Below are positions 1-20,228 of a stretch of 64,000 nucleotides of DNA, one piece after another; within the stretch, counting starts at the first letter, position 1; each line of letters begins with the position of its first letter. The stretch comes from Lepidodermella squamata. Its lineage: Eukaryota; Animalia; Gastrotricha. The notes below the pieces were generated by a model that ran no database searches, was not told where the DNA came from, and saw only the letters and a program-made list of their open reading frames with translations. A program made the position numbers and the translations under genes. Location of the stretch: contig JBLDXI010000038.1 of the NCBI GenBank assembly GCA_047495785.1, forward strand, positions 186,001-250,000. Reading direction: 5' to 3'.

Positions 1-3000
1 TGTTCAGCAACTACCCGCTGTCAAGGCCGGCCAGCCATACAAACCACTCACGTTCTTCTTAGACAGCTTGAACGCGTTCGAGCATTGGCTCAGGTGCCAC
101 AATGGCGAGCCAGCTTTTGCCCTCCAATTGCCGATTTTGCTACAAGTCATGTTGGTGCAGGCTCATCGCGAACGCGCCCTTCAATTGTTGTGTGAATTTG
201 TTGACCTTGGCACATGGGCCGTGTGCCAAGCAATCACCGTCGGCCTGTTGCCATACATCCACCGGTTGGTGACTAACAACGAAGTAACACTAGCTGATCG
301 ACTCGTTTTTGTATGGGCGAAAATTGTTTCCATCGACAAGTCATCTCAAATGGAGCTTATCAAATGCCAAACTTTCAAGTATTTTGGAGCGGTACGTTTT
401 ATTAGTTTTAAGATGGATTCATTTTATCGATTTTTTTCTGTAAATAGCTGCTCAGTCCCGATGTTGCTGTTTCTGGCCTTCCATCGGCGCCTTCAACTCG
501 CGCTCTTGCCGCCTTTGTCCTAACTGCCGTCATGGTTCGATTCGCCAAGTTGCAATGCGAACTCAGCACTTCAAACCAGTCTCCGGGACCCAATGGGGAT
601 AGCGCAGCTGAAAATGCGCCGCCTGCTGCCGCTGCTGCAGCGTCATCGTCAACCGGCCATTCTTCAACGGCGAAGGCTGATACTCGGGGCTTGCTGACCA
701 ACACCATGCTACAAGCCGCTGAACAAGGTTTTGTCTGTTTCGAACAAGACGCTGATTTGAGGCAGTGGTTATGCCTCTGCCTATCAGCCTTGTGGCAGTC
801 TGATGACGAGGCGAAAGAGGCGGGCAGACGGCGCTTCCTATGTGACACTATGCTGATGGGCCACAATCCGACGAAACATCGACCGGCTGTTCGAGCAGCT
901 TTGGTCCGGGCCCTAGCCGCGTATCTATCCCCCTCAGCAGCGACGACTCCAATGGCGAGGACGGCGCTAGATTCAATGCGCCAGCTTGCTATTTCGATGA
1001 ATAAATTCCTGGGCGATTCAAGCCCATTGGTGCGGCTTGAATTGGTAGCGTCGCTTGCTTCAGTCGCTCAGCAATTCGAGTTTTTCGTAAAATCGAAAGA
1101 ACAGTCCGACCAGCCTGGTGGCATGGCGAAACGAGGCTCGACTGTCAATTTGCTGTCATCGGCTTCTCATAGCAACCTGCAGAACTTGGCAACGTCTCCG
1201 CCACAACGTTCAAGCCTGCTACCAGGTATGATGACTCAACAAAGCCAACCGGGCGGGGCGGTGTCGCATTTTGATGCGTTTTGCGCAACAATGATGCGTT
1301 ACATCTCTTTCCTGGCGAGTGATCCACACCCTGAGGTGCATACAGCCGCGAATCATCTGCTGAAAATCATCGAAATGAAGCAAAGCGACCCGCAGGTTAG
1401 CTACATTTTGTGTACAAAATTATTCCTATCTCGATTTATTCAGGCCATGGTACAAGCTCGTACGCTGCGATACCAGTTTGCGAGGCGCGACTCGAATTCT
1501 CTGGCTGATGACCAGCAAGAACCGCCCGGGGGTGGTGGTCTGGTTATGAGCCCGCCAGAACAGCGGACGACAATAGGCCAGTTGGCTACCGACACGAACC
1601 GCCCGCTGTTCGAAACAGGTCTGCTCGACCAGGCGTTCTCGCAGATTCAGCAACCCCTCATGTCGAATAAGACCGACGAGCAAATGTTGGCGGCTGCCGA
1701 AATAAATCAGAGGCGGAGGCGTAATTTTTCGTCTTTCGGCGGCGGCGAGTTGACATTTCGCAGTGGTGTATCTGTCGTTCAGCAGTACACGGCCAATGTG
1801 AGTCGGTATACGCGAGACCAGCTGATTTCGCATATAGCGCTGCATCCTAATTTGGACCTGATGATCGCTGCAACTGCGGAATCGGTTATTCTGATCGATC
1901 TTCTGAATTCGAATGTCGTATCATCGATAAATTTGATCACGTCAGCTCAGAAGGCGCAGTTCAGGGCCGGGGCCCCGTCGGCCTCTCCGGTTGTGCATAC
2001 GCAGTTTATCAACGCTGATCTCGTTGATGACCTGTTAATGACCGTATCTGGCGACGGTTGCTTGCGAATTTTCGATAAGTATCGATCAGAAGACGACACG
2101 CAGCTGCTGACTACGTGCAATTTACTGGCCGACCAATTCATCTCGAATATTCAGAACGTGGGCGGTGCTTCGCCTGGCATTTTCGGCGTGGGTATTGGTT
2201 TGGGCGCCCAGCCCATCTCCGGCTCGTCGATGGGTGCTTCGAGGCGCCTTTTGACGTCAGCAGCCTGGGACCAGAATGCCGGCGTGTTGTACGTGGCCGG
2301 TGATCTTCAGTTCATCCGCATGTGGTCGGCTGAGGTGGAAAACTGTGTGCAGGACATTCCTATCGGGCTGCCTTTCACCCAAATGTTGACAACATGCGTG
2401 TGCCATTCGTCGTCAGTTTTCTCAGCTTCGTCGACCCCAACCGATATGCTTGTTGCCGGCTTCTCGTCCGGTCAAGTTCGCGCCTATTCGACGACTGGCT
2501 CTAGTGGCTCGAGTGGCAGTATTCTGCTTGGCAGCCATAAAGACTCTGTCATCGGTATTAGATGGCAGCCTAAATCTTCAAATGTCATTATTAGCGCAGA
2601 GTATGAAATTTATTTAGTTTCATATTGATTGCTTAAAATATTTGAAAATTTTTAGTACGCGAGGATTTGTGCGATTTTGGGACATCAGACACCCCAATTC
2701 TGTGCTGAACGAATTCAACTCGGTTCCTGACGCCGCTGTTTTCGACGTCCATCCCGAGGCGAATCTATGCTTATGGTAAGTTGATTCTGAAATTTGACGG
2801 TTTGCATGCATTTTTTAAGGTGGATTTGTTTATTTCAGTTCTTAATCTTTTTTAAATTGAGCATATTCTTTTCTTTTAGTTCATCTCGCCACCAAAGTGG
2901 CAGTTTGTACGTGCACCCGCTGAGTTATCCCAGTCAAATGGCTCAAGTTAGAATGTCGGTGGCTGCCGCCGATCTGCCCTCGCCTCAGATCAGCAAGGAC

Positions 3001-3309: not shown

Positions 3310-4380
3310 GATTATGAAATGTTGAAACAATTTCCGGACGTTGAATATGCGGTGCTGTCGACGATTCGGTGATCAATTACTATTGAATGCGATTCGTTTA
3401 GCCTTTGTTTTTTTGAGCAAGTTACGCCCGAGTTTCTCCGTATAACGTTTGATAAAAATGCCAAGTAAAATTAAACAAAATGATGCCCCGTCACATAAAG
3501 GTGTAACAGCTTTTTCGAAAATATATTTTCGTGGAAATCTCGGCAGGAAGTTCAATTTCCTAATTACATACCATGTACCAAGCCACCGAGTTTCACCCAA
3601 TGACCAGATTTGTTAGATTTCGGAGCTCCTGTTCATAACATCGATTGACCTCATCGTTTCATGACTCGCGACTGGTGCCATCGGATTCTCCATCAAATTT
3701 CGCGCATTCCTATAGGCTGAAATCTGAAAACTGAATTCCGCGTTCCAGAGGCATGAACTCTTTAAGGGAAAAATTTAGAAAAATGTATGTCCCAAAATTC
3801 TAAATTATCATTATAAATCGATGAATCGACCAGTGAGTCCAAGAATAACACGTGGCCTGATAACAAGGACAAATGAATTTGGAAAAATTGAGTGGGTTCG
3901 GTGACCTTTCTCCAAGAATCGAGCCATCAATCGCATTACCAGTGATTGGGTGTTGCTATTAGCAACTTCAGCTTCAGGTCTCGGAGCACCCTGATACACC
4001 TCAAAGTTGTAGCAACAGCCTGATGCATCGCACAGCTCGAAAATGTTGATGCAAAAGGGGTGACTTTTGGATTTGATGTATTGCCTGAACGACAGCCGAC
4101 CTCGAAAATTCATCATAGATTCGTCGATAACCATGCATTTTGGCAGATTTCCTTGACAGTGGAAGTTCATCTGAAGCCGATCAAGTGTCGGTCAAATTTC
4201 GGCTAAATTATCGGTGGCTAACTGATGCTGAGCAGAATTGGGGTTTGCGAAGCAAATCGCAGTGCACAAAAGCTGGAACCTGTTCCGGCTCATCCGATTC
4301 CTTGAACCTCGGCTCCAGGACCAATAAGTAGAAAGATTGGCAACTTTTCCGTGCTCATGAGTAGCCTTATTCCAAACCAA
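3310..4380 (-). mobile_element. Decayed piggyBac (PGBD4-like) transposase fragment
   Basis: Fragments MSRNRFQLL and IDESMMNFRGRLSFRQYIKSKSHPFCINIFELCDASGCCYNFEVYQG...LVMRLM..FLEKGH are typical of DDE_Tnp_1_7 transposases; broken by stops and frameshifts; no intact TIR/TTAA pair found, so boundaries are approximate. Confidence 0.85.
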
Positions 4381-8450: not shown

Positions 8451-9633
8451 TTACTTTCGTGGCACCTCCTAGCTCGCACTTCTCAATATATAGGACTAGG
8501 ATCGGAATTCTCCTGAGCTAAAAATTAGAAATTTTAGCAGCAACACACTCAGTTTTACCCATGCAACTAGTTGGAACTTGGTAAACAACGGTAAGGCATT
8601 ATTATATGATATTTAGATATCAGGCGTTTTGTCGATGTCCTCAATCGCTTATTAATCCAATAAAGTTATACCTAGGGTCTTAGAGCTAGTTAAAAAATAA
8701 GCTGGGACTTGCTTTTACGGTTCATCAGCTATCACTAAAACGCATTATAAATTTGTAACGCGTTATTTTACCTGTATATAGGCAGTTTTCTCTTTGTTTT
8801 CTCAGGAAGAGGTTTAACATTGGAGCAGAGTAGGGTCATTTATGATTTGGAATATGGGAAAGGTTATAACGCATACTACTGCTGATACGTTTCTGGAGCA
8901 GCTCAGAATTCAACATTATTGGCATTGGGAAGCGTGTTGCCTTCAAGGATACATTCAAAGCCGTTCCACGCTTCCCAACGTTGGAGAGCGTAGAGCGGCT
9001 TTGAATGTATTCTACGGTAGGCATGGGAGCACAATTCAGAAGGCAATAGAGAGGCGGCAAAATTATGCTAGGCAGATATCAGACCTCAGACGCATCTAAG
9101 GACCAAGGTATCGACATAGACGGATATGTGGTCTAATTATGTTGCTTTTAAAAGCTTCCATCTGTGTGTCTAAGATGAATGGCATTCGGCATATTTGCGT
9201 AAACTTTTCGCGCTGAAATATCTTGAAAACGGCAGCAGGGCTATTTTTAGCAAAAGACGGCGTTTGTAGCACACACGCACCATGTGCCTGGTGAATCATT
9301 CAACGCATGCTGCTGCGCCGGTTATTAATGCACGCGTTCTCGCCCCAAATCAGTTTTTTCCTGCATCCTCTTTTAGTTATAAGCAAAATATTTAATTCTA
9401 CGACCCGCAAAACCCGGATTTCGTTAATTATCCAGCCGGCTAGGTATACAAGTTGGAAAATTCTAATTGTATACCCATTTTATTATGCTATCTTACTTTC
9501 CAAGAATTTAAAGGAGTTGAGTGCATCACGGACATTCCTTTTTCGCGCCATGCGAATTTTCATCGAAATGATTTTTTTAGCACAATGGCCGTGGTTTAAC
9601 TTAATAATTTTTCCAATCGAATGCTCACATCTC

Positions 9634-11368
9634 ATGGCAACTTCTGAATCTCATCGGCTACTTTCGCGCGAACTAAAAAGGTTTGAACCCCAATTGAGGT
9701 TTTTAAATTTCCTATTAAAATGATTTCCTGCGCTCAGGCTTACCGACGTGTTTGAAGACAGCGGCATTAACGTCTTACCCGATGAAGACAATTTTTTCGT
9801 ATGGAAGCTGTGGTTCCAAGGCCCTGAAGGGACGGCATTTGAAAAAGGCACGTTCCACCTTGAGCTACGCTTTCCCGATAATTACCCACAAAAGCCGCCG
9901 GCTATCAAATTCCTTAATAGGATATTTCATCCGAATGGTACGTCTTGACTCTGATTTCCTCTGAATTATACAGATTACGGTTTCCTTCATTATAGTCCAT
10001 TTGGATGGATCCCTTTGTCTGGATATCCTAAGCAGTAACTGGTCGCCATGCTGCGACGTGTCGCTAATTGTCTGTTCAATCCGCGACTTTCTCGAGAATC
10101 CTAATCCTTACTCTCCAGCCAATGCAAACGCCGCGCTTCTATTCAGCCACGACCCGGATGCGTATCATGACCGTGTTCGGCGCCTTATCGACGCCCAGGG
10201 CGACAGCAACGCTGAGATGGCAATCCTAAATGAACCGATCAGCTCCGTCGAACTTCAGATGAAAGATGTCCGAATAAGCCGCGAAGCAGTTGCCAGAGTT
10301 CGACTTTCCCAAGATTTCGATCAGTACGGTTTTAGATTGAGGTGTTTTTATATTTAAAAACTAATTCGTGATAGGTTGAAACGGACAGTCGATCAACTAG
10401 ATGGTATTTCAGACCTGAATATGACAACATCTGATCTAAAACTGAGTGGAAAATTACTCGGCCGACAGCCATTCTACATACAATTTTCAAACACATATCC
10501 CCATGGCGTGGCCAGGGCTAATTTCGAAGACTGCCCACCTCATCCTAATAGTAAGGATTCTCAGGTTTTACCTTGTATTCATTTCTCCACAAATTGAAGT
10601 CTTCAAAGGGAAAATAATTTGTGTTCCATTACAGTTTCGCCCGACGGAATCCTATCGCTTAATCAGCAATCTTTCCGAAACTGGACCAGCAATCGTCGCG
10701 GAACAGGGCGACTTGGGTCTCTTCTCGCCAGCATTTTAGCCATTTTTGCCTCACCTAGTTCGGAGGCCGTAATTGTCAACCCTGCCGCAGCTCATCTTGC
10801 TGGAATATCGCATAAGTCCTGCCTTTCTCGTGAAGCTCAATTGCGGCTAGAAGACGAGCTAGCCGAGTAAGTTCCTTATAAATCTTGAATTTCAATTGTA
10901 TATAAGCGTTTTTGAACTTTTTGGTTACTGCGGGCGATTTGCAGGGTGCTCGTATTTGTCCTTTTTGGTGTCTTCTTCCAACTTGGGTCTCTAAAGTTGT
11001 TTTCAATTTAAACAGACTTAACTCGGCTTCGCCGTTCGGAATTAGCGCTGGGCCCACTGAACAAGATAACCTTTGGACCGTTGTAGTAGTTGGACCGGAG
11101 GCGTCGCCTCGCGAAGGCATAGTCTACAATCTCGAAATGGAATTCTCACCACGATACCCTTCGGAAGTTCCAACTCTTCGGTTCGTTGAACCTCGCTTAT
11201 TGCACCAACAAGGCAAGTTTCAAGTCAAATCATTGGCGTCTTTGACAGCAATATTATCATCTAATTTCAGTTGATCAACTCAGTGGTGTCGTGAAGCTTG
11301 ACTTTGAGTGGACTGAGCACACGCGAATCAGTAGCTTATTACTGGCTGTGCAAATGCTGATGCTGTAA
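9634..11368 (+). CDS. Triple-UBC-domain protein A (Rad6/UBE2A-like E2 + two catalytically dead UEV-like domains), ~425 aa
   Basis: Exons 9634-9680, 9738-9937, 9996-10323, 10375-10550, 10635-10866, 11016-11212, 11271-11368 join into one 1278-nt open frame. D1 [23 protein letters not shown]...PNPYSPAN; D2 PPHPNISPDGILSLN; D3 GPEASPREG...YPSEVP...LLHQQVDQLSGVVKLDF. Confidence 0.85.
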
Positions 11369-11785
11369 TGTATTAAGTTGTGAACTATATTATCATTGTT
11401 GATCTTCCCTTGTTCGATCTCACGCCATTTTGTTTGTTACGGCGTGCATTTTTTAAAACCTTTCAAGCGACTTTGCGTTTCATGCAATAAAAAATTTCCT
11501 TGGTAATATAATTTGGCATATGTTATGAATATCGCAATTGGGCGGAATATGAGCGTGAAGCTGCGTGTTGGTCAACGGTATCTTATCTTCGTTTATTTAG
11601 CGTAATCTTACTGATACCCCTCAAAGCTGGGAAATCAGCCGCTGTGCATATTTGGCACGCAACTCTGCCCTCCTACGTTTTCTTGGCCAGCGGTAGTCAC
11701 GAATTCGTGACCACCACTCCTCGGTACATATACAAAACAGCCCACATTTTCCGTTTCAGGTCATTGCATTCCTCCAAACTCAATT

Positions 11786-13275
11786 ATGACGCGTCGACTA
11801 CTAGACGAGCTCAAGAAGTTCGTTTTATCAATTTTTAATCTTCGAAACTTGAATTTCAGGATTATTTCAGATTCCATGACCATCCTGTCGATTGGGCCAG
11901 TGTGGAGCAGGACCCTATCGATTTGAGAAGATGGCTGTGTTCAATCCAAGGACCTGTTGGTACAGCTTTTGAAGGAGGAAATTTCAGTCTTCAGTTGCAA
12001 TTCTCAGAAGAATATCCCGCAAAAGCTCCTTCCGCATCTTTCCTCACTGAGATTTTTCATCCAAACGGTAAGGAAAGTCCTTTAAGCTGTAGCCTGGAAG
12101 ATTTAATTTATTTATCCTAGTTGGAAATGATGGTAAGGTTTGCATCGATATTTTACGCGACGCCTGGAACCCTCGTTTCGATGTTCCGATCCTTCTTATG
12201 GCTATAAGGCAATTTCTCTGCTACCCCAGCCTTAAATCGCCTGTAAATAAAACGGCCTCCGATCTCTATATCAACGATGTCGACGATTTCGAAAATAGGG
12301 TGAAGACTATTATTCGAGAAACCTCTCGCTGTAAGAGCCAGAAAAAGCCAGCTGGCGTCACTGCTTATCATTTATCGCCGATCAGTTCTTGGAACCCTGT
12401 CGAAATTGGGAGGTGTTGTTTGGAACGTGATTTCGAAAGGTAACCTGGTGGTTATACAACAGTGTAGTTTACCTAATTAACAAAATTAGGCTTGGCCAAG
12501 ATTTGGATAGCTTCAGAAACTTGGAAGTCGACCTAAAGCGAATGACTATTTCAGGATCAATTACTGGTCCGAGAAACAGCCCATTGTTCAATCTGACGTA
12601 TGACTTCACGATCGAATTCGAAGGCAGCTATCCGAACTGTTCGACCTGGGTTAAATTTCACACTCATATTTATCATCCGAATTGTGAGAACTTAGCATTT
12701 TTCAATTTCAAGTAATTTTTATCTAATTTCGCAGTCACGGATGATGGCCGGATAGACCAGCGATTATTCTCATCAAAGCCAACATGCGGATCAAATCGAC
12801 TGGAGATCATTCTGTCGACCATGCAATCCCTGATGTGCAACCCGAATCCTAATTTTATCGTAAACTCCGAAGCATTGAGCATTTTCCATCGACCAGCCAA
12901 CGTACAACCGATCTTGTCGAATTTCGCCAAAGCGAGACTTCGAAATGAGTATAAACGCCTAAATAATGGCGTTCTGAAGCCTGTGGAGTCAAGCGATTTC
13001 ACCCTCTGGAAAGCTTCGATCGAAGACGAATTGTCGAAAAATACCTCAGAATTTAGCATCGAAATTCCGGAAGACTATCCTTTCCGGTGCCCTAGCGTGA
13101 AATTAGTTTCTTCCAAATTGTCCGAAGCCTGTGAAAGTAAGTTTTCCTATTCCGTCGATTTAATTTTTACGTTATAATTATTCATAAAGTTGGAAAGCGA
13201 TTGGCGAAATTGGAGCAAATGTGGAAGCCGACCAATGATTTGATCGATTTGGTGAAATGGCTGCAATTTAGCTGA
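11786..13275 (+). CDS. Triple-UBC-domain protein B (paralog of A), ~409 aa
   Basis: Exons 11786-11817, 11871-12067, 12121-12439, 12490-12683, 12735-13136, 13190-13275 join into one 1230-nt open frame. D1 GPVGTAFEGG...[23 protein letters not shown]; D2 GPRNSP...IYHPNFTDDGRIDQRLF; D3 RLRNEYKRL...IPEDYPFRCPSVKL...WKP. Confidence 0.85.
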
Positions 13276-14666
13276 CATGAACGATTGTGGTTTTTTTGTA
13301 TTTAGCATATTCAATATTTATCCAGCTGTTAAATGATTAATGCACGAGGAAGGCAGACGAGGATTCAAATGGATAACACAATAAAATTTTAATTGTAAAA
13401 ACATATGTCAGACATATGTGTGTGTACGATGAATTTTCACATAGCTACTGCGTTCAGCTGAGGATCTGTAATTAAATATTTCGACGGTTTTTAGTAGGAA
13501 TAAAACCACCCATCCAGTTTCAGTAATGATGATGATGCGGATAAAATATTTACCAGCTGGAAAAATACCGGAAAGACGGCGCCATTGATCAAGGTTCGCA
13601 GCGATCTACGGCAAGGTGATTTTTTGTTTCCTAATGATGTGAAGCAGAAAATAGGTCACTTGATGCTTGTTAGACCTTATATAATTCAGGCAAATTGTTA
13701 TGATATCACAATTTAGTAATAGCAGGTGGACTAATAACGTCGCGTCCTATTACTTAATACAGCAATCTCATTATTAGTATTACTTTTCAATACTAATAAT
13801 AAATGGTAGTTGAGGTCATTGAGTAGCGCGCAAGAAGTGTAAAAAATGCGCGTGCTTGCGCATTGCGTGTGCGTCAACAATACGGACATAGGAGACGACA
13901 CACATGGCCAGGCTAGCACAATGTCGATAATACATGCCAGCAAATTATTGGATCCGCTTTTTATTATAATACAGTCCTAGCAGGAGGCACACATACGCGA
14001 CACACACGGCATTGTGCCCATTAAGTGCTGTGTGTAATAATATAATCGGAAAAGGGCGCTTTATTACCGTCGCGTCTTTTTTTACTATATAACGAGCGCC
14101 TTTCCGGCGCCACGACAACTCTCTAACCGAACCGTACTAGACGCAGCGACTTTTCATCGAAATCGCTAACCGCGATTATCATATTCCTCGCGTTCAAAAT
14201 CGCGCCTCAAAATTGGTCGCCGCCAGCAATCGCGCGCGTGTCTAAGAAATTTTCGATTTCATTACACAGACACCAGCACGCTAAATTACTTATTATCTGA
14301 CTGCACACTTGTCGCAACATCATCGTCATTGCTCGCCCAATTTATATAGCTACATCACAATTTTGTTGTTATTTATATTGCTATTATTGTCATCATCATC
14401 ATCATCGTCGTCAGTAGCTTCGTTGTTATTTGACTGTCGCGTATAGTACTGACATTTTTCATGTCGATAATTTTGTTTATTCCCCCATATTATATATATA
14501 GAGCGTATTCAGGCAATCGCTCCGTTATGTCCTATTACGATGATTTTCAGCTAACAAGAGCATATATAGTGATGCTGGTGGGCAAAAACACAAAATCGCA
14601 AGAAAAAATTCACCTCTTATTTTATCTGCCCTAGAATTTGTATTTAATTTTATTGGGACAAAACCA

Positions 14667-17600
14667 ATGGAAAGTAACCGCAGCCAGAGCACGGAGCAAT
14701 TACTGCGAGAATTCGACCAATATGCTGAGAAATACAACGTCAGGCGGCTTTTGAAAAATTGCATCATCGAACTAGGCCGCCATAAGCCTGAAGATCCTGT
14801 TTCTTTCCTGATCGATCACTTCACGCGGGTTTCTATGAAGCAAATGGTAAGTCTTAAGTATATTATTAGCCGCGGAAGTTTTTACTTTTTTGATTGTTAA
14901 ATGCGTGCGGCGAGAAATTATTTTTAACGAGTTTTTTTCGGTTCCTGGCTTGAATAATGTTAGACTTTGCCTAAAATCCAGGCCGTCCCTGCCGATAGCA
15001 GGCAAATCAGCGATGATGACACGGTCGCGGTATGAACCACGCCGGTGTATTAATCCTTGTCTGACTTTTAATTTTAACATATTTTCTGACAATATCTGTG
15101 TAGAATGCGAATGCCATCGTCTCGTTTATTTCTTCTCATCCTTGTCGTGATGCATTTTTAGAGGACTGTATACTGCTACGTATATCATCTAAAGCTACTA
15201 AAAGCCATCCCTTTGATTTGTCCAGTTTTTCCTCGGAGAAAATTTTCGGTAAAGCGCTAACTGTCGACAAAATTCGATTTGAAAAATCGTTGTCATGTCT
15301 TTCGCCGTTGTTATTTTTCATTTATTTATAAGCTTGACGCCCGCGAGCGCACGAAAATACTCTGTCCTTTCCTAAGCGATGTGTGACATTGATTGATCTC
15401 GAAAGATTGCGCCAATATGCTCACTTTTCTGCCGGCATAGTCAATTTTCAATCTTCAAGCCAGTTTCACATTCATCTGCATATAGCCGTTGTTGGGTTGA
15501 TATTCTGTTACCCTGCGTGACTTTTCTCTTCTTGGTGAGTCCAAGAACGAACTAGCTGTCAGACCCCGCATGCCGGCTTTTTTGAGCTACTTTCAAGATA
15601 CCTGAACCTCAGCCAACTCAACCCAACCTTATGAAGTTTTAGCGCAGTGTTTGTGGGTCTGATTTTTTTTGAATACAACTAGGCTGGTATGCGAAACATT
15701 TACGCTATTAGTTTTGATAACTAATAATAGTTAGAATTGTGGTAGGTGCATCTAATACCTACGCTAGTGCTATGAAAGTAGACTCTTTACATCATAGCAG
15801 GATTTAACCTTCTATTACGCCATTTGTTGTGAAAAAAGCATTGTACATCGGTACAACAGCAAAACAAAGTGGCTATATGTGCCTATACTATTTCGCACCT
15901 TGCTACAAATAGAAAATTACCGACTATAAAATTACAATATATGAGTTCCATTGAATAAATAATTGAACCCAATGATTAACGAAATACTCATTCCTTATCA
16001 ATCTGGCATCGTTATAATATTTATATTTTATTGTATCATGTATTAAAAATCTTATTAATAAAACCATCTGGCAACTCCAGTAAGCCGAAATTCCGATCGG
16101 CAAAACTCAAAGGTAAACTTTTATTCTACTATCGATTTCAATTTAATTTCAAGCCTGAGTGTAAAATTTTAAGGGTTTTCTATAGGCGTATGCATTTTAA
16201 TATAGCAGCCTTTCCTGCTGATGAGTCTGAGTTGTAAGAACTTGGCACAATATGCTAGCACGCAAATAGCGCGTGAAAATGAGGGAATCCATCATAATAT
16301 CGACAATCACAGTTCGGCGATTGCCTGCGTTGCTAGGGGCAACGGCGTGCATCAACACTGCGCCAATGTCTTCTTCATAATTTATTATTTCATCGGACGC
16401 GATTGATGTTCGATCGGTCGACTAATGGAAACTCGAAGCGGGCGTGATGTTTTAGAAAGGCCATTACCTTTACCCTCTGTAAAATAGGTAATATACTACT
16501 GTGATGATGGTAGACTAAATCTTGTAGTACGTCGCTTTTATATGAACTTGCGACAGCGCGAAAGTAATCCCAGGCAACAGCGCCACCTGGGCAACGCGCA
16601 TTGTATACTCTTGGACTTCCGTGTTTTTCCAGCATTGATATTATGAAAGCCGGCAAAAAAGTAGTAATTGGCAGCCATTTCCTAGCCCTTTGTTTACAAC
16701 TTCTCGACAACATATGCGCAGCATATTTTCTTTAATTATAACTTTCTTCGCAGAAACTTTGTTTCCTGAACTTTTTTATTCTCTACATTTTACAAAATCA
16801 CGGTGATGGAGTCATTCCAAGGCAGTGTGTTTGGTGTAGCGAACCGAGTCATATTTTTTTGCATATCTTTTTAGGTAAAATTTGGCGCTAACGGGTGCTT
16901 CGATTTGGTACTCATCTCAAGTACTTGCAAGCGTTCAATTTTTGTTCGCGAAGAAGCTAATGACCCGCTATCAAGTTATGCGCATTTAACTCACCGCAGC
17001 ATTTTTTTTTCTGCCTGGTTTCGGTATTCAATTTAGGCGTTTCGTTACCCGCAAGAAGTGATATAGCGCCAAAAAACTTGGGTGTATTACGCATCTCTTT
17101 TCCATTTGCAACATCGTCTTTATCATTTCATCCCATTTTGATAATCTAATGTAACGGCCGCTCGGCCGTTGGGACTGTAGTTTGCTGGCTTTTATTGAAA
17201 AAACAATATATCAGCGATTCGGGCCCAAAAGAGATCTCTTCAGAAAACAAACATAATAGTAATAGGTTATTATTAAAGGGCTAAAACTATTTCGCATCGT
17301 AAACACGATTTAGCTACAAATCATCAGCGCTGCCATGATATGGATTCATATATGTATATATATAAATCGCCTACCATCATTGTTCTTCACCAGGCAGTTC
17401 TTTTTAGTATCGACGCATTCATAGTCTTCCGAGCCGCCGGCAATATGTTGTATAGGGCGCATCGACCATCGATGATCGGCGCCGCGCGTGTACTAGAAAT
17501 GGCTTATTAGGTTATTCCTTAACTATAAATTGATATGAAGAGAGAGGAAAGGAGAGAGAAAGAGCCTATGAGGCAGAGAAAAAACCCGCGCGATCCGCGG

Positions 17601-20228
17601 AAACGCCGTCATGCGCCGAGCATTGTAATATTATTCTACGCTGGCGATATATATTGGATCCGCCGCGTCTTCGCTGCTTTCCTCGCCCGTTTTACTCATG
17701 GGTGTACAGATAAATGCATTGACGCCGCTGAAGATGATAAAAGCAAGTACTGCGCGCGTTGTGGTGCCGTTGTAGATTTTATTGTATTACTACACTTCTC
17801 CACTACCGAGAGTATTACCGAGTCTAAAGCTGCGCAGTCAGCAGCCGTCTGTTTTGTGGCCCCGACGCAGCCAAGCGCGGGAAAGAAAAAAATAGATAGA
17901 TATAAGCAAAAGCGAAACTCTCATAGTTCGCCGATGTTTCCTAATAGGCCATTGCGTATAATAATACAACATGAGATACGTCATATATATGTAGCAAAAG
18001 ATGCATGGCGTATATATTTATACACTAGTAGAAATATGTTGCCGCGCACAAATTATTTGTATCTTTTAGATTTTTTTATCGCTCGCCTTTTTTTCTCAGC
18101 TGCGAAATTTCAGGCTATGATGATGACACGCACGCTAGAGCACTTCTAAGTTAGGATACCTTAAGATTTATTATAGCTCGCGTTTTTATCTCTGCGAAAA
18201 AGGGTAGCACCGCGAAACACCGGCATATCATGTGGATACTTGGAATGACTCCATCCTTTTTATGTCCCGATTTTATCTACCCGACTTTTATAGGTACACA
18301 TTCGTACACTGAAATCAGCCAGCCGGCCTTGGAGATGTCGGCTAGAGAGCCGGCGATAATTACCAAAAATTAGGCCTTCGTTGATCGGAGAGAAATAATC
18401 AAACGATCTGCTGATGTGCTGTGGCTGCTGAGCACATTAATCATATAGCATTCGTTGTTTTTATTGTAATCACGCCTAATCATGGGGGCGAATTCGACCA
18501 AGCGAATGAGGCCGTGTTGGAAAAAGGTGCTACTCTTTCGTGCAGTAATATATCGTGTTTTATTTTTATTTCGATTAATAAATTGCCTCTTCTAAACAAA
18601 GAGGTGTCGCCTCAAGTGGGCACTATAGATTTTGCTCTCGCTTCGGCCAGGCGCGCGCTCGATTTTTCGCCGCTGTAGCATTCGAAAAAAACCCTTTTTT
18701 AATCAGTCCCATGCATAGACTTGACTTAAAAGCTATGTTTGCGTAAAAAAATCAGATTAGGCCGCAATCAAGCCAGCGCGTAGCTGCTATGAAAAATCAT
18801 TAAATTTGACTGCCTATTTTTAACATCACCTGTTTTTATATCAATTCAAGAACCAGCAAGTCGGTTCATCCGAACAAGTTACAACAAAAGACATGTCTGC
18901 GCACAACAAGCACAGTGATGACGAAGATGATGGCGAGCCCGAACCTCCTCCGCAGCGGCCTGTTACCGGCGGCCGAAAACGCCGCGAGGCTTTCGCCAAC
19001 CCGGTAAAATATTCACCTTTAACCTCTGATGATCCATATTTAAGATGAATTTTTCTCTATCAGACAATTGACCCTGAGGAAGCGGCGAATTACGTGAAGA
19101 AAGTTGTCGAGAAAGACCCGAAGTTGCGAGTTGAAATCGAAAAGGCCGTTTCCAAGAATTTACTCTTCCAACATCTCGATTCCCATGAGAAGAACGACGT
19201 TATCGACGCCATGTTCCCAATGGAGTTCAAGGTTTGCTAAATTCATCATGCCCCAAATGAGTTTTTTATGTTTTCTTTGTTCCTAAGGCTGGCGATAATA
19301 TCATCACACAAGGCGACGAGGGTGACAATTTTTACGTCAGCTATCTTGGCGAGGCACGTTTTCTTTGTAATAATATGCATTCCACAGACCGCAAAAATTC
19401 GATGAGCGGAGAAATATAGGACAAATGCAGGAATTTTTTAGCTAATTATAGCGTTGACATGGCTAACAAATTGAAGTTGGATAGCTTGAGGCTATTAGAA
19501 GTGCGCAAGCGTTTTTCTAGGACAGCGATGTGTGAAATTGTCTTGTAATAATTTTTTGTCGAATTATAGGTTGAAGTTTTCGTCAATAACAATCGCATCT
19601 GCGCGCTTCCCGAGGGCACCGGTTTCGGTGAACTGGCCATCATCTACAACAAACCTCGTGCTGCCACTATTAAAGCCAAATCCGATGTTGTCAAAGTGTG
19701 GGCCCTCGATCGCGACACCTATACGTGAGCATTTTGATAACAGTTAAATCCTGACCAAAATGCTTCTAATCCTACAGGCGAATCTTGATGAGCTCAACGA
19801 TTAAAAAGCGCCAAATGTACGACGACTTCCTGAAGCAAGTCCCGATTCTAGAAACCCTCGACCAATGGGAGCGGCTCACTGTTGCGGACGCGTTGGTGCC
19901 GTGCGAATTTAACAAAGGCGATGCAGTTATCAGGCAAGGCGACCAAGGCGATGATTTTTTCATCATCGTCGAGGGTGAAGCTCGTGTTCTCATTAAGAAG
20001 TCGCCAAATGAAGCTGAGAGCGAGGTGGGTCGCCTGAAGAAGAGCGACTACTTCGGCGAGTTGGCCCTCATTTTCGATAAGCCACGTGCCGCCACCGTCA
20101 TAGCCGACACGCACCTGCGATGCGTGAAACTCGATCGCAGCCGGTTCGAACGTCTTCTCGGTCCGTGCGCTTCTCTGCTGCAGCGCAACCTCGAAAAGTA
20201 CAACCAGTACATCAAGCCAGACAAGTGA
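14667..20228 (+). CDS. PRKAR1: cAMP-dependent protein kinase type I regulatory subunit
   Basis: D/D domain exon 14667-14846 ([21 protein letters not shown]); linker with pseudosubstrate RKRREAF (exon from 18851); two CNB domains with [15 protein letters not shown] and [15 protein letters not shown]; last exon ~19778-20228; ~4 kb first intron. Confidence 0.95.

Follow-up and report, generated by a model that had tools for sequence, protein, structure and literature searches.

Two adjacent Lepidodermella squamata genes encode proteins with a predicted active Rad6-type E2 domain followed by two Cys-less UBC repeats

We analyzed a stretch of 64,000 nucleotides (nt) of DNA from the gastrotrich Lepidodermella squamata (GenBank assembly GCA_047495785.1, contig JBLDXI010000038.1, positions 186,001 to 250,000 of the forward strand), hereafter called the window, and focused on two adjacent genes, A and B, whose products carry repeated copies of the UBC fold of ubiquitin-conjugating enzymes (E2s). 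E2 enzymes nearly always possess a single UBC domain, and regulatory inactive UBC folds (UEVs) are normally separate proteins. The window as a whole is of eukaryotic character, its introns being short (about 50 to 150 nt), and UBC-like open frames on the plus strand between positions 9634 and 13275 join through canonical splice sites into the two genes summarized in Table 1. An earlier note, made from the sequence alone, had proposed two continuous proteins of about 425 and 409 amino acids (aa) with three UBC repeats each, and the gene models and the splice junctions in complementary DNA (cDNA) agreed with this proposal. The two proteins are collinear along their whole length at 29% identity (E = 3e-41), as expected from the further claim of two strongly diverged paralogues sharing one arrangement of an active repeat followed by two dead ones, and tblastn with both proteins found no additional gene copy in the whole window. 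Both genes are expressed, and they form a tandem pair of deeply diverged paralogues.

The cDNA sequences were contigs of a public run, X1, which contains 57% of the region's sampled words. Since the X1 contigs are spliced and one of them ends in the SMART cDNA adapter at position 11473, X1 represents cDNA, and since the intergenic interval 11480-11743 is without coverage, the signal is not a DNA background. Ten of the 11 predicted introns were seen spliced in these contigs, with the junctions 9937/9996, 10323/10375, 10550/10635, 10866/11016, and 11212/11271 in gene A and 11817/11871, 12067/12121, 12439/12490, 12683/12735, and 13136/13190 in gene B. Among them are all three junctions that link one repeat to the next and had been singled out for checking (10323/10375, 10866/11016, and 12439/12490). 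For gene B, one 1283-nt contig spans the complete gene from about 11769 to 13311, which gives the minimum extent of its mRNA (at least 11769-13311), and the cDNA corrected the first boundary of the model, placing the end of exon 1 at 11817 and the start of exon 2 at 11871. For gene A, a 278-nt contig links exon 2 with exon 3, and a 914-nt contig runs from the last 82 nt of exon 3, which encode the linker after repeat 1, through repeats 2 and 3 into the 3′ untranslated region (UTR), the adapter marking the 3′ end of the mRNA at about 11473. The last intron of this gene (11213-11270) is skipped in a cDNA contig and is of the GC-AG type, the sole canonical-type reading of this interval within a 2-nt ambiguity. 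Exon 1 of gene A fits the model: it contributes the initiator Met and a helix 1 of the Rad6 type, and in position and phase its donor coincides with the donor verified by cDNA in gene B. Transcripts ending after repeat 1, or separate mRNAs for each repeat, had been named as findings that would speak against the proposal; the cDNA contigs showed full-length mRNAs instead.

At the 5′ end of gene A, a cDNA contig with a depth of about 8 has opposite-strand joints at 9587/9736 and 9643/9810. No genomic inverted repeat accounting for this contig was found, and the contig is probably a template-switch cDNA artefact. Regarding the source of the DNA, the whole stretch lies within one long DNA contig of a second run, X2, which may be the source assembly. 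X1 (2015) and X2 (2024) are labelled as different organisms, yet in all exons covered, their contigs show no difference from the window; this is one species under two names, or one of the labels is imprecise.

Table 1. Coordinates and domain content of genes A and B. UQ_con E values were obtained on single exons; Rad6 profile scores are in bits.
Feature	Positions	Strand	Description	UQ_con E value	Rad6 profile	Basis
Gene A coding region	9634-11368	+	7 exons, 425 aa			5/6 junctions in cDNA contigs
Gene A exons	9634-9680, 9738-9937, 9996-10323, 10375-10550, 10635-10866, 11016-11212, 11271-11368	+				Rebuilt from sequence
A repeat 1	9634-10198	+	aa 1-150, complete Rad6-like UBC domain	3.4e-19 and 9.4e-14	144	UQ_con, Rad6 profile
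A linker, repeats 1-2	10199-10288	+	~30 aa, contains PISS			A/B alignment
A repeat 2	10289-10819	+	aa 181-312, degenerate UBC fold		4.7 (weak)	z = 15.7 to B repeat 2
A repeat 3	10820-11368	+	aa 313-425, truncated UBC fold	8.6e-10	45	UQ_con, UBE2A (1.3e-9), Rad6 profile
Gene B coding region	11786-13275	+	6 exons, 409 aa			5/5 junctions in one cDNA contig
Gene B exons	11786-11817, 11871-12067, 12121-12439, 12490-12683, 12735-13136, 13190-13275	+				Rebuilt from sequence
B repeat 1	11786-12326	+	aa 1-145, complete Rad6-like UBC domain	3.8e-16 and 3.1e-11	117	UQ_con, Rad6 profile
B repeat 2	12417-12907	+	aa 176-305, UBC fold	4.1e-9	58	UQ_con, Rad6 profile
B repeat 3	12908-13275	+	aa 306-409, truncated UBC fold	9.9e-7	22	UQ_con, Rad6 profile

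The domain content of the two proteins was evaluated with Pfam PF00179 (UQ_con, cut-off of 27 bits) and with a Rad6 profile made from 14 Rad6-type proteins that a large protein-library search had returned. As summarized in Table 1, the expectation of three UQ_con matches per protein held for all three repeats of B and for repeats 1 and 3 of A, and failed for A repeat 2, which gave no Pfam match; the Rad6 profile resolved three domains in B and, in A, two domains flanking the weak match to repeat 2. The assignment of A repeat 2 comes from its relation to the corresponding repeat of B: it aligned with B repeat 2 at a Smith-Waterman z score of 15.7 versus about 6 with the repeat 1 domains, it grouped with B repeat 2 in a tree of the six repeats with a support of 96/93, and it retains the YP...HPN...DG landmarks. 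The RWD domain of the FANCL type scored 13 to 19 bits, below its cut-off of 22.8, at positions lying under stronger UQ_con matches. No RING or other domain was found past repeat 3, with which both proteins terminate.

Inspection of the catalytic residues revealed a clear difference among the repeats. In both proteins repeat 1 carries the HPN motif and, 8 residues past its Asn, the catalytic Cys, which is Cys90 in A (HPN codons 9928-9936, Cys codon 10016-10018) and Cys84 in B (codon 12141-12143). An L/I-D pair behind the Cys and the equivalents of W96, S120, N123, and A126 are all present in both genes. In repeat 2 the HPN is kept (10541-10549 in A) while the Cys position is occupied by Ser258 in A (10655-10657) and by Asp255 in B (12755-12757); both copies are without the S120 equivalent and without helix 4, the last helix, and the beta2-beta3 region of the A copy is shortened. 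Repeat 3 has HQQ in A and no HPN in B, its active-site loop is shortened and holds no Cys, and in both genes it stops directly after crossover helix 2. The reading of the earlier note thus stood on each of these points: it had assigned HPN together with the catalytic Cys to repeat 1 alone, HPN with a Cys-to-Ser (A) or Cys-to-Asp (B) replacement to repeat 2, and the loss of both HPN and Cys, with an end before the C-terminal helices, to repeat 3. From these residues, repeat 1 is predicted to be a diverged but catalytically complete E2 domain of the Rad6/UBE2A type.

Between repeats 1 and 2, the linkers of A and B (10199-10288 and 12327-12416) are each about 30 aa long and otherwise unrelated, and have a P-I-S-S motif in common. 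This motif could be a phosphorylation or docking site.

The relationship of the repeats to known E2 families was examined by their matches to solved structures. Repeat 1, which had been described as Rad6-like, indeed found UBE2A, UBE2B, and Rad6 as its best matches at 1e-15, versus about 1e-9 for UBE2D. This family also tops the match lists of the N-half of B repeat 2, of the C-half of B repeat 2 together with the N-half of B repeat 3, and of A repeat 3, with UBE2A as the best match of B repeat 2, and it leads the exhaustive protein-library search described below as well. UEV2/Mms2 chains appeared lower in the list for A repeat 3 (1.5e-5 versus 1.3e-9 for UBE2A), and UEV2 chains were absent among the listed matches for the pieces of B. 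Since the dead repeats match Rad6-type proteins best and their introns are periodic (see below), they are Rad6-derived pseudo-E2s rather than members of the UEV family. The description of these repeats as UEV-like therefore stood in part: the missing Cys and the lost terminal helices are as described, while the ancestry is not that of UEVs, given the best matches of all recognizable halves to UBE2A/B/Rad6 and the internal duplication. The label is an analogy only, which refers to the loss of the Cys and of the terminal helices. Compared with a Rad6-type reference, a single plant protein with an aberrant C-terminal end, repeat 1 has an identity of only about 42% in A and 33% in B, and A and B are therefore derived paralogues, not housekeeping Rad6. 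Their lengths of 425 and 409 aa and their three repeats likewise differ from a single-domain Rad6 orthologue of about 150 aa, a protein very highly conserved among eukaryotes.

The positions and phases of the introns revealed how the three-repeat layout arose. The 11 introns share two homologous positions. One is a phase-2 intron that interrupts the codon corresponding to the Arg in the F-K-R-L motif of helix 1, and it occurs in all three repeats of A and in the first two of B; the other is a phase-1 intron directly after HPN or its equivalent, present in 6 of 6 repeats. These periodic positions and phases indicated that a two-exon Rad6-like block of the gene itself had been duplicated in tandem to give the repeats; as phase-2 introns flank this block, such a duplication leaves the frame intact. 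Repeats 2 and 3 are copies of the repeat 1-type domain, Cys-less and progressively truncated. In A and B alike, the linker has the same length and carries PISS, repeat 2 is without helix 4, and repeat 3 is cut off at the same point; from these common features, the clade of A repeat 2 with B repeat 2, and the collinearity of the two proteins, it follows that at least the duplication separating repeat 1 from repeat 2 is older than the split of A and B. The six-repeat tree resolves the repeat 2 pair alone and leaves repeat 3 unplaced because the branches are too long; very probably, the entire triplication predates the A/B split.

We then considered whether the dead repeats are under constraint. 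The ratio of nonsynonymous to synonymous substitution rates (dN/dS) between A and B is undefined because the synonymous sites are saturated. Past repeat 1, however, each paralogue has kept about 240 codons open and every splice site intact, which would occur by chance with a probability of about 1e-5 per gene. As an ordinary E2 would remain if the frame stopped after repeat 1, only selection on the tail itself keeps the tail open, and the suggestion that the retained pattern reflects selection is supported by this. Together, these sequence data argue for dead repeats that are functional, with relaxed or diversifying sequence evolution.

The two proteins share features with three known systems and differ from each. 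As in Rad6, UBE2A, and UBE2B, repeat 1 has HPN, the Cys, and the S120/N123/A126 equivalents, and repeats 2 and 3 match these enzymes best too; canonical Rad6, in contrast, is a single domain of about 150 aa, to which about 270 aa of two dead repeats are added here. Mms2/UEV1 proteins, the noncatalytic UBC-fold partners of the active E2 Ubc13 (PMC2171356), resemble the dead repeats in having UBC folds without a catalytic Cys and without C-terminal helices, but they act in trans and form an old family of their own, whereas the dead folds of A and B sit in cis next to the Rad6-like domain from which they descend. FANCL also has three UBC/RWD-type folds in tandem in a single chain, of which a Cys-less E2-like fold binds ubiquitin noncovalently (PMC4543658, PMC3173227); all three of its folds are inactive and serve a RING-type ubiquitin ligase (E3), whereas A and B begin with an intact E2 fold and have no RING.

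We reasoned that the A and B proteins could be E2s with built-in pseudo-E2 modules acting on repeat 1, and we give this reading a probability of roughly 0.6. Repeat 1 would be charged with ubiquitin at its Cys by the ubiquitin-activating enzyme (E1), repeats 2 and 3 would serve as pseudo-E2 modules that bind the usual partners of an E2 surface (ubiquitin, an E3 helix, or another UBC fold), and this binding would tune or target what repeat 1 does. A and B would then represent lineage-specific, specialized E2s rather than housekeeping Rad6. There are precedents for Cys-less UBC-type folds as binding modules, namely, Mms2/Uev1 with Ubc13 (PMC2171356) and the ubiquitin-binding E2-like fold of FANCL within its chain of three UBC/RWD folds (PMC4543658, PMC3173227), and the backside of Rad6 serves as a site at which ubiquitin and E3 helices exert regulation (PMC4605308, PMC10018343). 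The dead repeats might hold an acceptor ubiquitin, cover the backside of repeat 1, or bring in E3s or substrates, three possibilities among which the evidence does not discriminate. In the pair, an active E2 appears to have duplicated its own domain twice within one gene, the copies having been inactivated and the layout kept by both diverged paralogues, and A and B could reveal how pseudo-enzymes emerge from enzymes and what the tethering of a pseudo-E2 does to ubiquitin transfer.

Several observations weigh against this reading. A repeat 2 is so degenerate that Pfam and Atlas feature searches miss its halves, and the dead repeats of A and B are only 24 to 27% identical, with dN at about 1.0 versus 0.56 for repeat 1. 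The residue at the Cys position is unconserved, Ser in A and Asp in B, and thus does not imply a common chemistry. Coverage of gene A by cDNA is thin in its 5′ part: the exon 1/2 junction (9680/9738) was not seen in the X1 contigs, and 9811-9904 is uncovered. Finally, the collections searched yielded no orthologue from which dN/dS could be measured.

Four other explanations were weighed against the same evidence. An unlikely one, which takes up the self-contained chain builder suggested in the earlier note, is that A and B are single-chain analogues of Ubc13-Mms2, in which a dead repeat holds the acceptor ubiquitin so that repeat 1 can assemble single-linkage chains with no UEV partner in trans. 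The layout of an active fold followed by dead ones and the loss of C-terminal helices do parallel Mms2/Uev1 (PMC2171356), and the backside surface of Rad6 influences the conjugating activity of Rad6 itself (PMC4605308); yet the dead repeats are of Rad6 rather than UEV descent, so that no Mms2-type acceptor-binding surface can be inferred from homology, and they are poorly conserved between A and B. With the same low likelihood, the pair might be an independently evolved single-chain equivalent of Ubc13-Mms2 confined to a poorly sampled animal lineage, a Rad6-derived E2 whose own duplicated and inactivated domains hold ubiquitin, either acceptor or donor, or else a ubiquitin-like protein. Were it so, such a chain would be a self-sufficient, E3-independent chain builder or an E2/E3 hybrid. 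Somewhat less credible still is a decoy or sink, also raised in the earlier note, which would sequester E1, Rad6-binding E3s (of the Rad18, Bre1, or Ubr1 type), or ubiquitin and thereby damp the canonical Rad6 pathway. Each chain offers three Rad6-derived surfaces for this, and the Rad6 backside is a known docking site of E3 helices (PMC10018343), but a pure decoy needs no catalytic residue, and all of those checked are kept in repeat 1 of both paralogues.

That the dead repeats are a functionless, decaying tail of the internal duplication, with repeat 1 alone being of importance, is improbable in our view. Values of dN between A and B are 0.56, 0.95, and 1.05 for repeats 1, 2, and 3, respectively, so repeats 2 and 3 evolve about twice as fast as repeat 1, and the truncation of repeat 3 and the barely recognizable A repeat 2 are in line with decay. 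However, the tail has stayed open and spliceable in both paralogues despite saturation, A and B agree in where repeat 3 is truncated, in the HPN of repeat 2, and in the linker motif, and the cDNA contigs show full-length mRNA. The proposal with by far the least credence is that each locus holds three separate adjacent E2 genes, joined by wrong models or by a polycistronic precursor RNA. Merged models of tandem E2 genes do exist in databases, probably including the Hibiscus singleton KAL4348862.1; in A and B, though, ordinary spliced introns connect the repeats in one frame with no stop, UTR, or start codon between them, and the exon after each post-HPN intron holds the end of one repeat together with the beginning of the next. 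The tandem-gene or polycistron artefact was rejected on the cDNA splice evidence, and pseudo-E2 modules acting on a putatively active repeat 1 remain the reading we prefer.

Next, the distribution of the family was assessed. An exhaustive phmmer search with B exon 5, the most family-specific piece (C-half of repeat 2 and N-half of repeat 3), found no orthologue in 1.84 billion representative proteins, a library that includes annotated eukaryotic proteomes (e.g., of plants) and not this genome's own proteins. It returned 19 matches, the best at E = 1e-6, all of which were ordinary Rad6-type E2s or spurious repeat proteins. As this search would miss relatives as remote as gene A, which is about 22% identical over the exon 5 stretch, the absence is only moderate evidence of restriction. 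No homologue of A exon 3 was found in a word-indexed collection whose length window of 60 to 189 aa excludes full-length kin, and no orthologue was found in metagenome contigs or in viral contigs, the single viral match being an ordinary single-domain E2 of 167 aa of the giant-virus type. Rare architectures with several UQ_con domains are listed in InterPro and are not known to have been characterized. Full-text literature searches yielded no published description of tandem or multiple UBC, UQ_con, or E2 domains, and the earlier note, which knew of no described metazoan family with this architecture, was upheld on this point by the literature and the protein collections searched. Thus, A and B apparently represent a new domain architecture within the known E2 family, confined to a poorly sampled lineage.

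Two predicted plant proteins, KAL4348862.1 of Hibiscus cannabinus (P0001) and KAF2587800.1 of Brassica cretica (P0005), resemble A and B in having more than one Rad6-type UBC segment. Unlike the gastrotrich pair, both are singleton models with the appearance of merged genes, and they are related to A and B through the ordinary Rad6 domain alone. KAL4348862.1 was rejected as a tandem-UBC relative, as it is a singleton 9.6-kb model with an intron-like insert and probably merges neighbouring genes. This model (L002:5001-14579) comprises a partial active Rad6 domain and a second Rad6-like domain in which the Cys is replaced by Phe, and one of the genes merged in it may be a Cys-less Rad6 paralogue.

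The window gave no Rfam match, and no other ubiquitin-system gene was found near A and B. Upstream lies an uninterrupted open frame of 726 aa (448-2625, plus strand) in a GC-richer stretch (52%), with no Pfam match. It is followed, in the gene-poor stretch upstream of gene A, by a fragment of a piggyBac-type transposase on the minus strand (3814-4191; Pfam DDE_Tnp_1_7, 4.4e-16). Downstream, on the plus strand, is a gene resembling the regulatory subunit of PKA, with an RIIa docking domain at 14544-14897 and a cyclic-nucleotide-binding domain (cNMP-binding) at 19770-20225.

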